A DNA stretch of 64,000 bases from Basidiobolus meristosporus CBS 931.73 (lineage: Eukaryota; Fungi; Basidiobolomycota): positions 1 to 64,000 of the forward strand of contig MCFE01000441.1 in assembly GCA_002104905.1 (NCBI GenBank), given 5' to 3'. Numbering within the stretch: position 1 is the stretch's first letter; every line of letters begins with the position of its first letter. The notes below the pieces were generated by a model, which saw nothing but the letters and a program-made list of their open reading frames with translations, was not told the DNA's origin and did not search any database. Below, one piece after another: positions 11,754-18,640 of this stretch. The position numbers and the translations under genes were made by a program.

Positions 11754-14700
11754 ATGAACGAATTCTCCACGTTTGAGCGTTCCCTCTGCGATGCCTGCTT
11801 GCTTCTCATTTATTCGGAGAGTCGCGAACCGCTAGAGTTTCTTGATATTTGCGTGCAGTGTGCTCCAAAGATAGTACCAAAAAACGTCTGGCCCCCCTTG
11901 TTGAAAAATATTCAAGCTCCCACCGGAAAGCGGAAGAAAGCCGCGAAACCCATTTTTTCAAGAAGCGAGCTCGAGTCCGGGGTGTGTGACTGCTGTTCTA
12001 AAAACAGCTTGGTCCAGTTTATCGGGGAAATACCGCTTTGCCATGAATGTTCCACAACTTTCATAGCTAGCAGCGCTTCATTAAGGTCAGGGCGTCTACC
12101 TACCTTTGCGGAGACGAAGGATATAGTCGGTCGTAAAACTGCTTCCTCAAAGACTATCTGCTATTTCCCCGAGTCTTCTGACACAGACACTGACGAGCAA
12201 TTATATGAAGAGTGCCTGGAATATAATTATTCGAGGCTATTCAGGGATATTGCTCAGGAATACCTCGAAGAAAACGGTCGAGATTTTGAGGACTGTTTGA
12301 TGGCTTGCGGGCTGCTTCCTGTCGTATTCAAAAGTGATAAGGTGAAGGATGAAGTGGCAGAGACAAGCCTTAACCATGACGATATATTGCCTTCCGATGC
12401 GTATCTTGATAAATCGGGATCACCATCAATTCCCGAGCATTCAGATCTGGCGGTTGGTTCTCAGTGTACAGCAATGGCGACTACCACCGATGAGCTAACT
12501 GTTGAAGAAAATTGTCCAGAGGAGACCGATCCGCGTTCTCCCATGAATGTTGCGGAGAATAGACCAGAAAACGATAGTGAGAGTTACCTGGATGACGGAT
12601 TGGTAAACTTTGTGAAGATAGAAGAGGGCGCACCAAGTTTTGAGGGGCAAATTCAAAGTGAGGCCTTCATAGATTCAGAAGAGTTGCCTGCCATAGCGAA
12701 ACCGAGCACTCCCTCTTTGCAAGATAATCACGAGCATACTTATGTCGGTGCTGTGGATATATCTGAGCTTCCTGAAGGCGTAATCTCAGTGGAACCAGGG
12801 CCAATTCCAACAGAGCCTGCGGTACCTTTGAAAGTAGAGAGTCCCAGACCTTTAGCATTGGAGCCAGCCGATCTCCATTGTAATTCATGGACACAATGTG
12901 ATGCAACGGATACTGAGAATAAACCATTCCACACTACACCCTCAACTAGTGTTCAAGTAACCCCGCGAAAACGAGGCAGGCCGAGGAAACATCCGATCAT
13001 CGAGCAAAACACACCTCTTACCACCGGGGTATCAACAAAAACTGCCGATTCTGTGAGTGGCAACAAGGAACCACTAGACAACGATTCAACACTACCCACT
13101 CCACGAAAAAGAGGGAGGCCAAGAAAATATCCCGTCGCGGAAAATCCTGTCCCTAAAAGACCACGAGGGAGACCAAGGAAGTATCCTTGCGGCGATAGTT
13201 CCAATCCACGCGTATCATTGGACATCACCGCAGGTGGCTCAGCAAAACAACCAGTGCCAAGAGAGCGTCCACAGGTGGCATCAGCTCAACATCCCCTTCC
13301 AAGTTCTCAAAGCAAGGCCACAGCTAGTTGTTTCTTGACAAGAGGAACAACCAGCAAAATATCGAAACTGGTTGAGAATGAGCTCGACGTGCATCGTTTC
13401 GAGAAACATCGCAGGGTCAAAGTGCTATACAATGACGGCATCTGGTATATCGGTAGAATGATGGAAATAAGCCATGGTAAAATCCGCATACATTACGATG
13501 ACTGGGATGAAACTCATGATGAATGGATCGACTCTCACAGCAAACGGATCTATATTTTTACTAGCGAAGAGGATGAAGGGCCTGTGAGCCGCAGACAAAA
13601 GCGATTGGCAATCCAGAGTGTGGTCAAGCTTGAAGACATGAATGAGCTGGCTTCCCTGGTAAAGCAGGAGCCCATCATTCCAGAAATTCGTAACTACGAA
13701 TCAACCGGCGCAGATCAAGGGATAGTCGAATATATTGAGGAAAGAACTAGAGAGAGATCAACCATCTCTGTCTCCGCGTCCAGTGTTGATGAGTCGTCTC
13801 CTCTTCCCGAAGAGCAGCTTGAGGAAGCAAGTGAAAAATACAATGCACCAGGCTCAATAATGCTATACGAGGAGCACAGATCGATCAGTCAAGACATAAA
13901 TGAGCCAAACTTCATAGACGCGTGGAGAGACTCTGCGGTAAGCGAACAGGATATGTCGAAGCAGAAAGTCCCGGGAATCGCCGATCTTTCTCGTGGGTAC
14001 AACCTCCGGAGCTCAATGAACCTGGATACAGAATCGACTGTAGATAGCCCAGAGAGCGCTACCGCAAAAGAGTCCAAAAAACGCCGTACCTCTCACAATA
14101 TATTTAAGGACCGGTTCAAAGTTGGATCAACTCTTGAGGTCAGAGATCGTCTGAAGGAATGGTGTACTGGGGTGGTTATGGCAATCAAAGGATACCGTGT
14201 ACTGATCCATTACGAAGGTTGGCCAAGCACACACGATGAGTGGATTGAAATAAACAGCAAACGTTTGAAGCCCAACACTGTGATCGAGAAACAGGAGAAA
14301 TTCGAGGAGAAGGAGTTGGATCGCTTGGTTGAGGAGCAAATTGCCGACATCGAAAAGAGGGTAATTATCCGAAGGAAGAAACCAGATCAGAAAGAGGAGC
14401 CTGTTCTGATGGCTGAATATTTCGACGAATCAAACATCGTTGAGGGAGTTGGTGAGTACCCATTGGTATGGCATACTTGGTTACATTATTGAGCATTATC
14501 ATTAGAAAGCGAGAAATGGAAGGTCTACTGCAACCAGTGCAAGGTAGTAATCAAACAGATAAGGTAATGCCCAGATCTAGTTGACCTCTGTCCAGACTCT
14601 GATTAACCCTCCTACTAGATATTACTGCACCTACTGCGAAAATCCATCCGAAGGTTACGACTACGAAAGCTTTGACCTATGTTTATGGTAAATAGTGAGG

Positions 14701-17700
14701 TTGACTCCCTCCCCCGTAGGCCATTGACCAATTTTCTGCATAGGTGCTTTTCACGAAAATTCCCAAGGAAACACCAACACCCGCGCTCCTCGTTCGCTGT
14801 GGAATACATCATGGAAGATGCCAACATCGAGCTGGCTCCCATCATCGGGGAGCTGGTAACGAAGTACGAAAAGGATATCTTTGATGAAAGCTACACGGAG
14901 ATAGATGGGAAACCCTACATGCAAGCAGTCTGTTGTGAGGAAGATAGGAGTCATATTTCCTTATTGAAATGGAAAAAACGAAAGATCTGCGCCTTCTGTA
15001 ACGACGAAGACCCAAACATACTGGGGGGTTTCATTGGCCCTAAACCTTTTGTATACATCAAGGTAACCAACGAGGGAAACAAGAAGAGAAAGAGCTTCTG
15101 GACCCATGATGCGTGTGCTCGATATTCACCTGAGGTGGTTCAGACCAAAGAAGGGGATTGGTATAATGTCAGCATGGCATTAAACAGAGGAAGAAAGATG
15201 GTTCGTACGGAATTGTAACCAAGTGCTACACTGAACGGCTTTCTAACAGGCTCAATAGAGGTGTGCAGTTTGCAAAGAGAAAGGAGCCACCATCGGGTGT
15301 TTCGAAGCCAAATGTCCAAAGAGCTATCATATTCTGTGTACCAAAAAGCCCATGCCACACTTCGAAAAAGGGGTGATATTCTGGTGCCCTCAGCACGAGT
15401 CAATAAGAAGCAAAAAAGGTAATAAGTAATGAACGTCCTAAACCACTGCGTCACCCTCTTAAACGCTGCCTACTTGCTAGAAAAATACAACGACGTATTC
15501 AGCTGCGATGTATGTAATCGAAGCTTTCAAGATGACAGCTGGTTCACATGCATTCCTTGCAGTGACGACTACTTTTCATCCTACGATCTGTGTACCGAGG
15601 TAATTGACTTTGTCGGAGCGCATGAAGGAATATCTGTTAAGGCATTTGTAGTGTTATGAACAAGGTTTTCCCCAATCACACCCGCATCTACCGGTAGATT
15701 TCAAGAAAACTTGTAAGGAGATCAACAACTTGTCGTCACACTGTAGGCTAATCATATCCTTCTAGGCTTGAACGACATACTCGAGGCCCAGGCCATTGAG
15801 GATATCACGAAAGGAAAGAATGAGAAATCATGTTTGTACCTTACAGTTGGAGAAGCTTTATCCAACCATTCGCCTAACATCCTGTCCATAGCACGGAAAA
15901 AGAACTTCACTCCCAAGCACTTGCGTCGCGGGGATAAGATATGCTCCTATTGTTCATCTACAACTTCATCCGTTTGGAGAAAGGGTTCGATTTGGTTTTA
16001 TTCTCATTGTGCTCTACGTTTCTGGGACTCAACTCAGTTTCCGGATAGGCTTTAACGGGGTGCTGATGTGCGGAAATTGCTTTCAATTATCCCATGTACA
16101 GAACAACCATATTAAATCCGAAGCCGGGGCTATCTCTGTGGAAGAATACACCAGCCAGCTGTGCAACTACGAGGAGTGCGTTGATGACTACACTCACAAT
16201 CCATATTTAACCAGAATCGCTTGTACGGATACTCTTTTCGACAACAACATCAAAACCCTATACTTGGATAGTTACGCTCCAACTGAATGCCATCTGTTCT
16301 CCCTCACCATCGATAGCACCTACTACGATGTCCCCGGAAGAGCACCAAGATGTAAACGAGTCTTCATACTTTCACTCAGGTAGCCACTAACGCTCGACAC
16401 CTGTAGGGGCTACTCACTCTGGCACGGATTATCATGGTTGGTGGTATTGATTTCGGTTGCTTGGTATCTGTATGTAATTAACCTGGATTCCAGGAACCTG
16501 GTTGCCTCAGAGCGTCAGAAGGTAGTCTACGCAATCCCTTTCTCATGCCATAGGACAGACTGTAACGTCAGCAGAGCATTGCAGAAGTACACGCGGCCCA
16601 ATGAACGGATTCTATCGAACTTTCTTGGACGAGGTACTGGGCCACAACATTAAATATTTGGAGAGGTTATCAGGCTTAACAAGAAATTAGGGACCGACGC
16701 CATCGAGAGTTTTTTACTCGCAAGAAAGTATGCTACCATAAACTTATCGTCATTCGCTGGCCTGAGCTAACATTAGATACGTGGTAGATGCATCGGACTA
16801 GATATCAATCCAGTAAGTGGACATGTTGTTCTGGTGCTGCGCTGCCGATACTCAATGATTTCTAGGCTGCCGTAGCACTCTCAAGAAGAAATTGCTCGTT
16901 CGCCATTCCTCCCGATCTTGGGATCACCGCCGAGCATCGACCCACTGTTATGCAGGGCGACTCCCGATATCTAGTTGGGCCGCTCTTTGAAGATGAGTCG
17001 TTTGATCACGTGCTTTCCCACCCACCATATAAAGATTGTGTAGCATATTCTACTCACATAGAGGGGGACTTGTCTAGGTTCGCCTATTCTGAAGATTTCT
17101 TGATAGAATACAGCAAAGTCGTGGATGAGACTTGGAGGTGAGCACTGAGTGACCTGATTGTGCCAGCATACTCAACCTCGTTCAACAGGGTCCTAAAGAT
17201 GGGTCGTCGCTGTACTTTGGGAATAGGCGACAACAGAGAGCATTGCTTCTACATTCCAGTAGGATTTCGAATGATAAGCAAGTACATTGAGCGTGGCTTT
17301 GAATTGGAAGAATTGGTAACCGTACGACAAAAAGTTCCTCTTATCTCTCTTCACTGAAGCATGATCTGTTAGATTGTCAAACGACAACGATATTGTTCCG
17401 CTTTTGGGTTAGGCACCTATCTCTGCGTCCAGTATGATTTCCTGATATTTACCCATGAGTTTTTGGTAACCTTACGGAAAATAGACCCTGAGAAAGTGCA
17501 CACGCCAGCTGCATCAGGTTTAAGACGAGTTGGTGTATCCGTTTCGTGAGTGGTGGCTAATACTCATACTCTTAGATGATCAGGATGGTATTCATGAGAT
17601 GACCATCACTGAGACTGTTCGTGGCATCCCATATTGCCCCATTGCTAGGAAAAGTGTGGTGATGGGGACAGTTTGGACATTTAAGCCATCAGCCGAGTTC

Positions 17701-18640
17701 TCATTTGTATCACTCTGTACATCCAGGATGGTAGAGAGGTTCGGAAAAAATGGGTACAACTGGGAAGAAATCCGGATTGAGTTTGCCAAACAAAACGTGA
17801 TCCCCCTTTGTTCCTGAGAATTGTCTTTAAGCATCCTAACAAGAATGTGATCTAGGACCGCCTTCAAGAGAGTCGCATGGTGGAGACACAGAATGGTATT
17901 ACCATATCGCGTCTTTTGTACAATCTCTTGACTAACCCAATCTTTTCAGAAATCTACTCGGAAATGGAAATGTCTCCCTACGAGAGGAGTCGTCTACGAA
18001 GGATCCAGGAGAACAACCAGAAGTTGCTGGCCTTGGTAAGCCTTGCTAGTCCTTACCGCATTGTCTACGCTTCTCATTCAAAAGCCGATATTTAGGGGGT
18101 TATTTCGGACTTAAGTGAAGAATCTGATGACATTTCACACTGCGAAAAGTTACAAAATCTTGAACCTCACCCTCCGCCTGCGCCCTTACTTCTGGTTGTT
18201 ATTCCTCACATACCTAGTACGGTGATCCTTGAAAGCCAGCTATCGGAGTATCGAGCAACCATCCTGAGATGTGCTAAACAAGCGGTAGAAAAACTCCCAC
18301 CATACGGCGATTTGATTGTGGGGGCTCAAGATGTCCGCTTAGAACAAGACCGGCTGTATCCATTGGGAATCCGCATCATGGAAGATATTACAAACAACGT
18401 CCCGGAATTTCGCCTGAAGGAGCTTATCGTGACGGTTCCGGACGGATACGCCAAAGATCGTCGTAAACAATGCAATTGGGAGGAATTCGAAGATCAGAAA
18501 TGCGCCTTGGAAGAGGCAGTGGAACATGTACCAATAGTTCATGTAAGTGCATTCAATTGGAATCTATGAAGCATTGTGCTAAATCGCTGGTTGAATAGGC
18601 ATATTATTTAGTGTTTATGAAAAGACCCGATATAAGTTGA
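11754..18640 (+). CDS. Large multi-exon chromatin-reader DNA amino-methyltransferase: Cys-rich N-terminus, 3 AT-hooks, 2 Tudor/chromo-barrel, ZZ, extended PHD, ZZ, GATA finger, N6/N4-MTase, KRI-like helix, degenerate second MTase
   Basis: RGRP hooks at ~12970, 13110 and 13165; ...IHYDDWDETHDEWI and IHYEGWPSTHDEWI barrels; CNQC..CTYC..DLCLWC; HDACA...CAVC..GATIGC..C..SYH..C; CSYCSSTTSSVWRKG..MCGNC. MTase motif I NFLGRG (~16618) and motif IV VLSHPPY (~17010). YERSRLRRIQENNQKLL at ~17980. Exons join in frame via GT-AG introns read by eye. Confidence 0.85.

Follow-up and report, generated by a model that had tools for sequence, protein, structure and literature searches.

The question raised by this locus is whether a window of 64,000 nucleotides (nt) of Basidiobolus meristosporus CBS 931.73 (contig MCFE01000441.1, positions 1 to 64,000, the whole stretch that was analysed) encodes a single protein in which an amino-methyltransferase is joined to a series of chromatin-reading modules, and what such a protein would methylate. 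The gene in question is read from 11754 to 18640 on the forward strand, with 21 exons and 1,919 codons plus a stop. Judged by its sequence it is the B. meristosporus member of Group-1 Clade 4, a family known from sequence analysis only, and the identity and structure of the gene as described here are held with high confidence. The best overall explanation, a Clade 4 DNA adenine methylase fused to chromatin readers, is moderately favoured, and the chances that N6-adenine methylation of DNA is the product are rated as even.

The gene and its two public models

All 20 introns are of the GT-AG type and 50-64 nt long, their phases agree and there are no internal stop codons; the splice sites were read from the DNA and checked against orthologues. 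The G+C content of the region is about 45% and the reading frames are interrupted by the short introns. The product of exon 1 is identical to the GenBank protein K493DRAFT_340602 of the same contig. GenBank has two models here, both on the forward strand: K493DRAFT_340602 (11754-15218, 1,099 amino acids, aa) and K493DRAFT_340603 (16066-18640, 583 aa).

It is very probable, as far as homology and splice signals tell, that the two models are pieces of one gene. The first model ends where the GT donor at 15201 is read through into a stop, so that its final residues are intron sequence; the break falls halfway through an extended PHD finger, whose remaining half follows in frame 58 nt downstream. 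The second model begins at a methionine within a GATA finger and skips exon 17 (17373-17517), a conserved catalytic segment. The approximately 850 nt between the models (15219-16065) are unannotated yet coding, and contain the second half of the extended PHD finger, ZZ finger 2 and, at its end, the first half of the GATA finger, all conserved domains; three zinc-finger domains are split precisely at the breaks and stops of the public models. Of a dozen named orthologues, at least six have models that consist of one polypeptide, and those of Calcarisporiella, Funneliformis, Geosiphon, Actinomortierella, Dimargaris and Entophlyctis are collinear from about 13000 to 18545, a span that takes in the two models with the gap. 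Two adjacent genes as annotated, one for a reader protein of 1,099 aa and one for a separate methyltransferase of 583 aa, would agree with the two GenBank models, but this arrangement is considered very unlikely. A reading made earlier from the letters of the sequence alone had also proposed one multi-exon gene, at 11754-17480. The single gene is upheld by the splice pattern and the collinearity of the orthologues, but the end is not, as the gene runs about 1.2 kb further, to 18640.

The junction between exons 11 and 12 is placed tentatively, within the stretch 16437-16571 that covers the introns around exon 11. The GT-AG choice (donor 16522, acceptor end 16571) gives one residue more than in the orthologues; the length in the public model agrees with the consensus, at the cost of a non-canonical GT-AC intron.

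The methyltransferase module and the reader array

The catalytic methyltransferase domain is encoded by exons 9-17 (16320..17480, +) and was recognised by alignment, PF01555, a profile match to Protein Data Bank (PDB) sequences and a Rossmann fold. The motifs come in the order I-II-III-IV (FLGRGT, GLDINP, QGDSR and HPPY) and are followed by an LGIGDNRE and a THEF...RK segment. Motif I, NFLGRGT, is the S-adenosylmethionine (AdoMet) loop and lies at 16618..16695 (+) with an intron (16634-16690) inside it, while the motif IV tetrad H-P-P-Y is found at 17019..17030 (+). Of the 53 relatives checked, bacterial ones among them, 52 have HPPY, and the F-x-G-x-G pattern of motif I is nearly always there throughout the family. 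In chytrids, Zoopagomycota, Mucoromycota, Glomeromycotina and an ichthyosporean, F-x-G-x-G, the Asp of motif II and HPPY are invariant or nearly so, and from these intact conserved motifs the domain is likely to be active.

In the relatives the Pfam model PF01555 (N6_N4_Mtase) passes its threshold, with the match divided into two parts whose order is exchanged along the protein; this makes the domain an unpermuted relative of the beta-class DNA amino-methylases. The scores are 27-50 bits in orthologues and 76-84 bits in bacterial relatives, and the public 583-aa model, which lacks one exon, gives 26.5 bits against a gathering threshold of 26.7. Single methyltransferase exons had no match in Pfam because they are too short. 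The gene is not itself a typical PF01555 enzyme, which would be permuted and have D, N or S first in motif IV; here motif I precedes motif IV and the tetrad is HPPY. Nor does it belong to the MT-A70 enzymes (PF05063, DPPW), an assignment that was rejected since a PF05063 match was found in no family member searched. The Trm11/UPF0020 type of RNA methylase, marked by THUMP or another RNA-binding domain, a D-P-P-Y-G motif and PF01170, is not indicated either: no THUMP match was found, the fungal proteins do not match PF01170, and the bacterial relatives mostly match it weakly, the cut-off being exceeded only in the protein P0068. When the family profile was compared with PDB sequences, the best match was the beta-class DNA methylase 2zie (E 4e-19) and the second an archaeal Trm11 (E 1e-10).

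The sequence-only reading had recognised a Rossmann methyltransferase with NFLGRG as motif I and SHPPY as motif IV, and had set it apart from the MT-A70 system. The fold, motif I and the distance from MT-A70 are all borne out, and the letters SHPPY are present. The reading of motif IV as an S-type motif does not stand, as the tetrad is HPPY and a Ser one residue upstream of it is no marker of an N4-cytosine enzyme. The option of an N4-methylcytosine (4mC) writer rested on that reading, and 4mC activity was rejected because the tetrad is not SPPY.

Exons 18-21 (17576..18637, +) encode a second, degenerate methyltransferase domain, identified by alignment, hhalign and the predicted fold of an orthologue. 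The G-x-G AdoMet loop is absent and HPPY is replaced by PHIP, with a conserved segment and then a KRI-like helix preceding it. The helix, with the motif YER..RL.RI.EN, was placed by alignment at approximately 17940-18035 (+). Both domains together, the tandem module, take up about aa 1370-1919 of the model. The trimmed core of domain 1 and domain 2 are aligned by hhalign over 114 columns with a probability of 95.7% (E 9e-9), and on this comparison domain 2 is homologous to the half of the catalytic domain that follows motif IV. In the Calcarisporiella orthologue the tandem module is predicted to fold as one compact unit (predicted local distance difference test, pLDDT, 84; predicted template modelling score, pTM, 0.86). 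The model of this orthologue, from Calcarisporiella thermophila, ends in a RabGAP-TBC domain at residues 2039-2236, which probably comes from a merged neighbouring gene.

The reader modules take up the protein upstream of the methyltransferase. The N-terminus (11787..12050, +) is rich in Cys and contains a putative zinc finger, seen as a pattern of four CxxC motifs in two CxxC...CxxC pairs (aa 12/33 and 78/96); a Pfam scan of this region gave no match. Three AT-hooks with RGRPRK cores follow at 12963-12998, 13101-13136 and 13155-13190 (+), found by regular expression and by a weak match to the Pfam AT_hook model, for which a weak score is expected as the model has 13 residues. The two Royal-family barrels, both MBT/Tudor-like, lie at 13389..13568 (+; Pfam MBT 24.1 bits, with sub-threshold SAWADEE, Tudor_4 and chromo-like matches) and 14109..14288 (+; MBT 33.9 bits). 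By sequence they appear to be MBT/Tudor-like hybrids with W/Y, Y, W and H as putative residues of an aromatic cage.

ZZ finger 1 is encoded by exons 2-4 with two introns within it (14515..14780, +; Pfam ZZ 21.8 bits, P0001:895-965), and the UniRef name of the public model is ZZ-type domain-containing protein. The extended PHD finger (14985..15405, +) has the intron 15201-15258 inside and was identified with the zf-HC5HC2H profile and the orthologues. Exon 5 by itself covers positions 39-90 of the 91 in the profile (34.3 bits, E 2.7e-8) and shares 69% identity with the Calcarisporiella orthologue; the whole domain gives E 1e-8 to 1e-10 in orthologues. ZZ finger 2 (exons 6-7, 15495..15690, +) lies in the unannotated gap and was recognised by its Cys/His pattern and by collinearity with the ZZ region of the orthologues, the intron-split half-domain in a single-exon query giving a Pfam E of only 3.7. 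The GATA-type finger CSYC-x17-CGNC (C-x2-C-x17-C-x2-C; 15942..16080, +), with the intron 15985-16048 inside, was identified by pattern and orthologue alignment; its half-domain, also intron-split, gives a Pfam E of 0.15, and the Actinomortierella orthologue is named GATA-type domain-containing protein.

Every module listed in the sequence-only reading, from the Cys-rich N-terminus to the GATA finger, is thus present by Pfam, pattern or orthologue alignment. The profile search that it had suggested places MBT, ZZ and zf-HC5HC2H above the Pfam cut-offs in the gene's own sequence (MBT 22 bits, ZZ 21.4, zf-HC5HC2H 29.1). Two barrels had been called Tudor/chromo; their number is right but the class label is replaced by the MBT/Tudor-like hybrid.

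Group-1 Clade 4 was described as known only in basal fungi and as having a non-permuted methyltransferase domain, related to the M.MboIIA/M.MunI group, together with Chromo-type barrels, an N-terminal zinc finger, ZZ, PHD and GATA fingers and AT-hooks (Iyer, Zhang, Aravind 2016, BioEssays; PMC4738411). In the same description the N-terminal zinc finger is termed DNMT3-like, a second, inactive methyltransferase domain carries a KRI insert, prokaryotic versions occur in DpnII systems and the family motif is given as [DNSH]PP[YFW], in which His is allowed (PMC4738411). The gene shares with the clade the unpermuted order, the Royal-family barrels, all of the other reader types and the inactive domain with its KRI-like helix, and both its DpnII-linked relatives and its placement in the tree, given below, agree with the clade; among the reader fusions, ZZ finger 2, the GATA finger and the N-terminal finger were assigned by pattern and orthologue alignment only. 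The earlier remark that reader-fused amino-methyltransferases of early-diverging fungi had been noticed by comparative genomics holds, as the architecture fits the published one module for module. B. meristosporus is absent among the abbreviated species of the clade as published.

Relatives in eukaryotes, bacteria and archaea

Relatives were searched for with one 90-aa exon as query against 1.84 billion proteins, and 76 were found. Most are 1,300-2,450 aa long with the methyltransferase near the C-terminus, and their Pfam content is MBT, zf-HC5HC2H, ZZ and N6_N4_Mtase. Mucor lusitanicus has the orthologue MUCCIDRAFT_114945, and Phycomyces has one as well. Exon 1 was also tried as a query and discarded, since it retrieved its own public model and an AT-hook match that was spurious. 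The ichthyosporean Chromosphaera perkinsii (EukProt) has a member of 1,947 residues in which an extended PHD finger is combined with the HPPY domain and the second domain. Going by this sequence the family extends beyond fungi, unlike the published scope of basal fungi only.

A tree of catalytic domains (29 eukaryotic, 87 prokaryotic), which has long branches and a prokaryotic sample picked by similarity to one query, places the eukaryotes on one branch with a Shimodaira-Hasegawa-like approximate likelihood ratio test (SH-aLRT) value of 100. The order within this branch is roughly taxonomic. Basidiobolus, represented by a partial sequence, is found among Zoopagomycota and Mucoromycota, and Chromosphaera perkinsii falls outside the fungi on a long branch. 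The topology fits a single old acquisition by eukaryotes.

HPPY relatives abound among uncultured bacteria and archaea, where there are at least 581 loci, and the bacterial relatives already possess the degenerate second domain. The bacterial and eukaryotic modules are 28-38% identical and the regions after motif IV are well conserved. The tandem HPPY methylases of bacterial and archaeal DpnII-type cassettes (e.g. WOR-3 MEO0265878.1) have the same motif order, the same HPPY, the same segment before motif I and a degenerate domain 2, but they are 470-530 aa long, are without readers and KRI-like helix, in some cases have a small N-terminal Cys motif, and stand beside endonucleases.

The neighbourhoods of 80 bacterial and archaeal loci and of a WOR-3 locus (L003) were surveyed with flanks of 5-6 kb at most. 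A DpnII-family endonuclease is present in the flanks of nine of the 80 and of L003, in most of them directly beside the methylase. At three loci (L037, L039, L067) the layout is a Dam-type methylase, the HPPY enzyme and a DpnII endonuclease, while at four (L003, L036, L050, L077) no methylase other than the HPPY enzyme accompanies the endonuclease, as in the WOR-3 pair at L003:2175-4589. Where it is the sole methylase next to DpnII, the HPPY enzyme must protect double-stranded DNA. At the Paceibacterota locus L036 (3526-8822) the pair of HPPY methylase and DpnII is flanked by a CAP12/Pycsar-type TIR effector gene on one side and a GmrSD-type endonuclease gene on the other, a region that looks like a defence island.

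The second methylase of the classical DpnII-type cassette on the Lactococcus plasmid pSRQ700 (L086:2137-2946), which is reportedly the DpnA homologue (Moineau et al. 1995), has 269 residues and is permuted, with DPPY (aa 47-51) ahead of FVGSGT (aa 226-233), and it can be aligned with an HPPY enzyme over short motif segments only. The gene is not of the classical DpnA/M.LlaDCHIB type, a single-domain permuted DPPY enzyme of about 270 aa. It has in common with DpnA/M.LlaDCHIB and other beta-class PF01555 enzymes (M.MboIIA, M.RsrI, CcrM, TTHA0409) the superfamily, a motif I segment of about 41% identity, both PF01555 halves and the position in the cassette. It differs from them in that they are circularly permuted, with DPPY N-terminal and FxGSGT C-terminal, have a single domain of about 230-370 aa, and have Asp and not His in the tetrad. 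The bacterial HPPY relatives not being of the classical DpnA type, their link to DpnII is one of gene neighbourhood and not of DpnA descent, and the inference of single-stranded DNA as substrate (PMC4738411) is not directly transferable to them. The permuted pSRQ700 enzyme is at odds with the non-permuted group heading 'DpnA' in the same paper.

New here are the tandem domain in the bacterial relatives, the DpnII adjacency including the loci with a sole methylase, the distinctness from DpnA, the ichthyosporean member and the single eukaryotic branch.

Possible substrate and role

DNA is preferred as the substrate because the relatives pass PF01555, some bacterial relatives adjoin DpnII genes, the best solved relative by sequence is a DNA methylase and the fused modules bind DNA or histones; we infer GATC as the ancestral target. 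The product is taken to be one nuclear protein of 1,919 residues, the N-terminal two thirds of which would act as an array holding it to chromatin, the AT-hooks and the GATA finger binding DNA and the barrels, ZZ fingers and extended PHD finger binding histone tails. The C-terminal third would be a two-lobed methyltransferase module taken whole from bacteria, in which the catalytic Rossmann lobe, with FLGRGT as its AdoMet loop and HPPY, may act on N6 of adenine in DNA, and the duplicated degenerate domain, presumably unable to bind AdoMet, is probably the partner lobe of a built-in pseudo-dimer. The reader array may limit the enzyme to particular chromatin, and the product would be a minor, targeted share of N6-methyladenine (6mA) rather than the bulk mark.

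Several observations weigh against a DNA adenine methylase encoded by a gene of this structure. No RNA run was listed for the stretch, and the exon joins were placed by homology and sequence logic. The closest collinear solved folds, going by predicted models, appear to be the tRNA N2-methylguanosine (m2G) methylases Trm11, TrmN and Trm14. No characterised precedent for a His at the first position of motif IV, as in HPPY, was found in the literature, nor any experimental work on the Clade 4 family, nor a paper of any kind on it later than its description in 2016. At about 70 of the 80 bacterial loci a DpnII gene is absent from the flanks examined. The data from Mucor lusitanicus, which has an orthologue, point the same way: its genomic DNA is not cut by DpnI, its symmetric 6mA is wholly lost without Mta1 or P1, and 70-75% of its total 6mA is MetB-dependent (PMC11258239). 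These data make a role as major 6mA writer unlikely, at least in Mucor, and leave little room for this enzyme in vegetative mycelium, so that any 6mA output on DNA would be minor, targeted or stage-limited. The genes examined in that study were metA, metB, metC, mta1 and p1, none of which is in the Clade 4 family (PMC11258239). A 2026 review of fungal DNA methylation names only MTA1c, MetB and METTL4 and does not include the Clade 4 family.

Among the rivals to DNA as substrate, a chromatin-held RNA methyltransferase, forming N6-methyladenosine (m6A), or m2G like Trm11, on nascent or chromatin-bound RNA, with readers that only position it at transcribed loci, is the most serious but still rather unlikely. 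Searches with two predicted models (Foldseek, VIA) put Trm11, TrmN and Trm14 first (Z 17-19), only just ahead of generic class I methylases (Z 15-16); the archaeal Trm11 that came second in the profile search is aligned from before motif I through PPY; some bacterial relatives are labelled TRM11 family by NCBI; and amino-methylases acquired by eukaryotes are argued to have often shifted to RNA (PMC4738411). The structural ranking is nevertheless biased and is no evidence on the substrate, as order-dependent aligners cannot score the permuted beta-class enzymes. The sequence similarity is greater to DNA methylases, Pfam found no RNA-binding domain (THUMP, CCCH, KH, PPR), and neither the fused DNA- or histone-binding modules nor the restriction-modification cassettes of the bacterial relatives suit an RNA enzyme. 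A shift to protein, e.g. to histone glutamine or lysine, of the kind made by other (D/N)PP(Y/F) enzymes such as HemK and the eEF1A lysine methylase, is improbable. The superfamily does contain protein glutamine methylases (PMC4738411) and the protein seems built for nucleosome binding, but the NCBIfam PrmC/HemK matches among bacterial relatives are weak, protein-methylase matches being far below threshold, and the catalytic domain retains the above identity to the DpnII-cassette enzymes, with conservation extending beyond motif IV.

It is slightly less probable again that the methyltransferase module is non-catalytic and serves as a DNA- or AdoMet-binding part of a chromatin scaffold. The His in place of the usual Asp, Asn or Ser, the lack of a clearly unassigned 6mA fraction in Mucor and the presence of one dead domain in the protein already would all be explained in this way. 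The AdoMet loop and HPPY are, however, invariant over roughly a billion years of fungal divergence by our estimate, the same motifs are invariant in bacterial relatives that must shield DNA from a neighbouring DpnII endonuclease, and a His in the tetrad is within the published family motif.

The preferred DNA adenine methylase may be compared with systems of known function. MTA1c, an MT-A70 enzyme, and MetB are likewise found in early-diverging fungi, and MetB too is of bacterial origin. MTA1c belongs to PF05063 and is permuted with DPPW, MetB is of the PF02384 type I/IIL, and neither has the reader array of this gene; their function is proven genetically, while the Clade 4 family is known from sequence. 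The bdelloid rotifer N4CMT, a PF01555 methylase and a demonstrated 4mC writer, is similarly a bacterial enzyme that a eukaryote acquired and joined to a reader of methyl-lysine; it differs in being beta-class and permuted, has a single chromodomain and represents a separate acquisition.

Early-diverging fungal 6mA is now explained by two writers, MTA1c and MetB. That there is a third DNA 6mA writer in these fungi and at least one ichthyosporean, guided by readers, descended from GATC methylases and overlooked by current models, is put forward tentatively, as a possibility that is less likely than its absence. As GATC contains ApT, the product of such an enzyme would be hidden within the symmetric VATB signal attributed to MTA1c; or else it would occur only at certain stages, in certain chromatin states or on single-stranded DNA during replication or meiosis.

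The wrong public models at the B. meristosporus locus mean that domain-based surveys would miss the fusion in that species. The family is retained in lineages from chytrids to Glomeromycotina as well as in an ichthyosporean; its catalytic motifs are intact, and its reader array ranks among the richest known for a methyltransferase. With an orthologue in Mucor lusitanicus and the good genetics of that fungus, the question is testable now. If the enzyme is a DNA 6mA writer, it would be a direct link from histone state to adenine methylation, and a shift to RNA or protein would make it a clear example of a repurposed restriction-modification enzyme.

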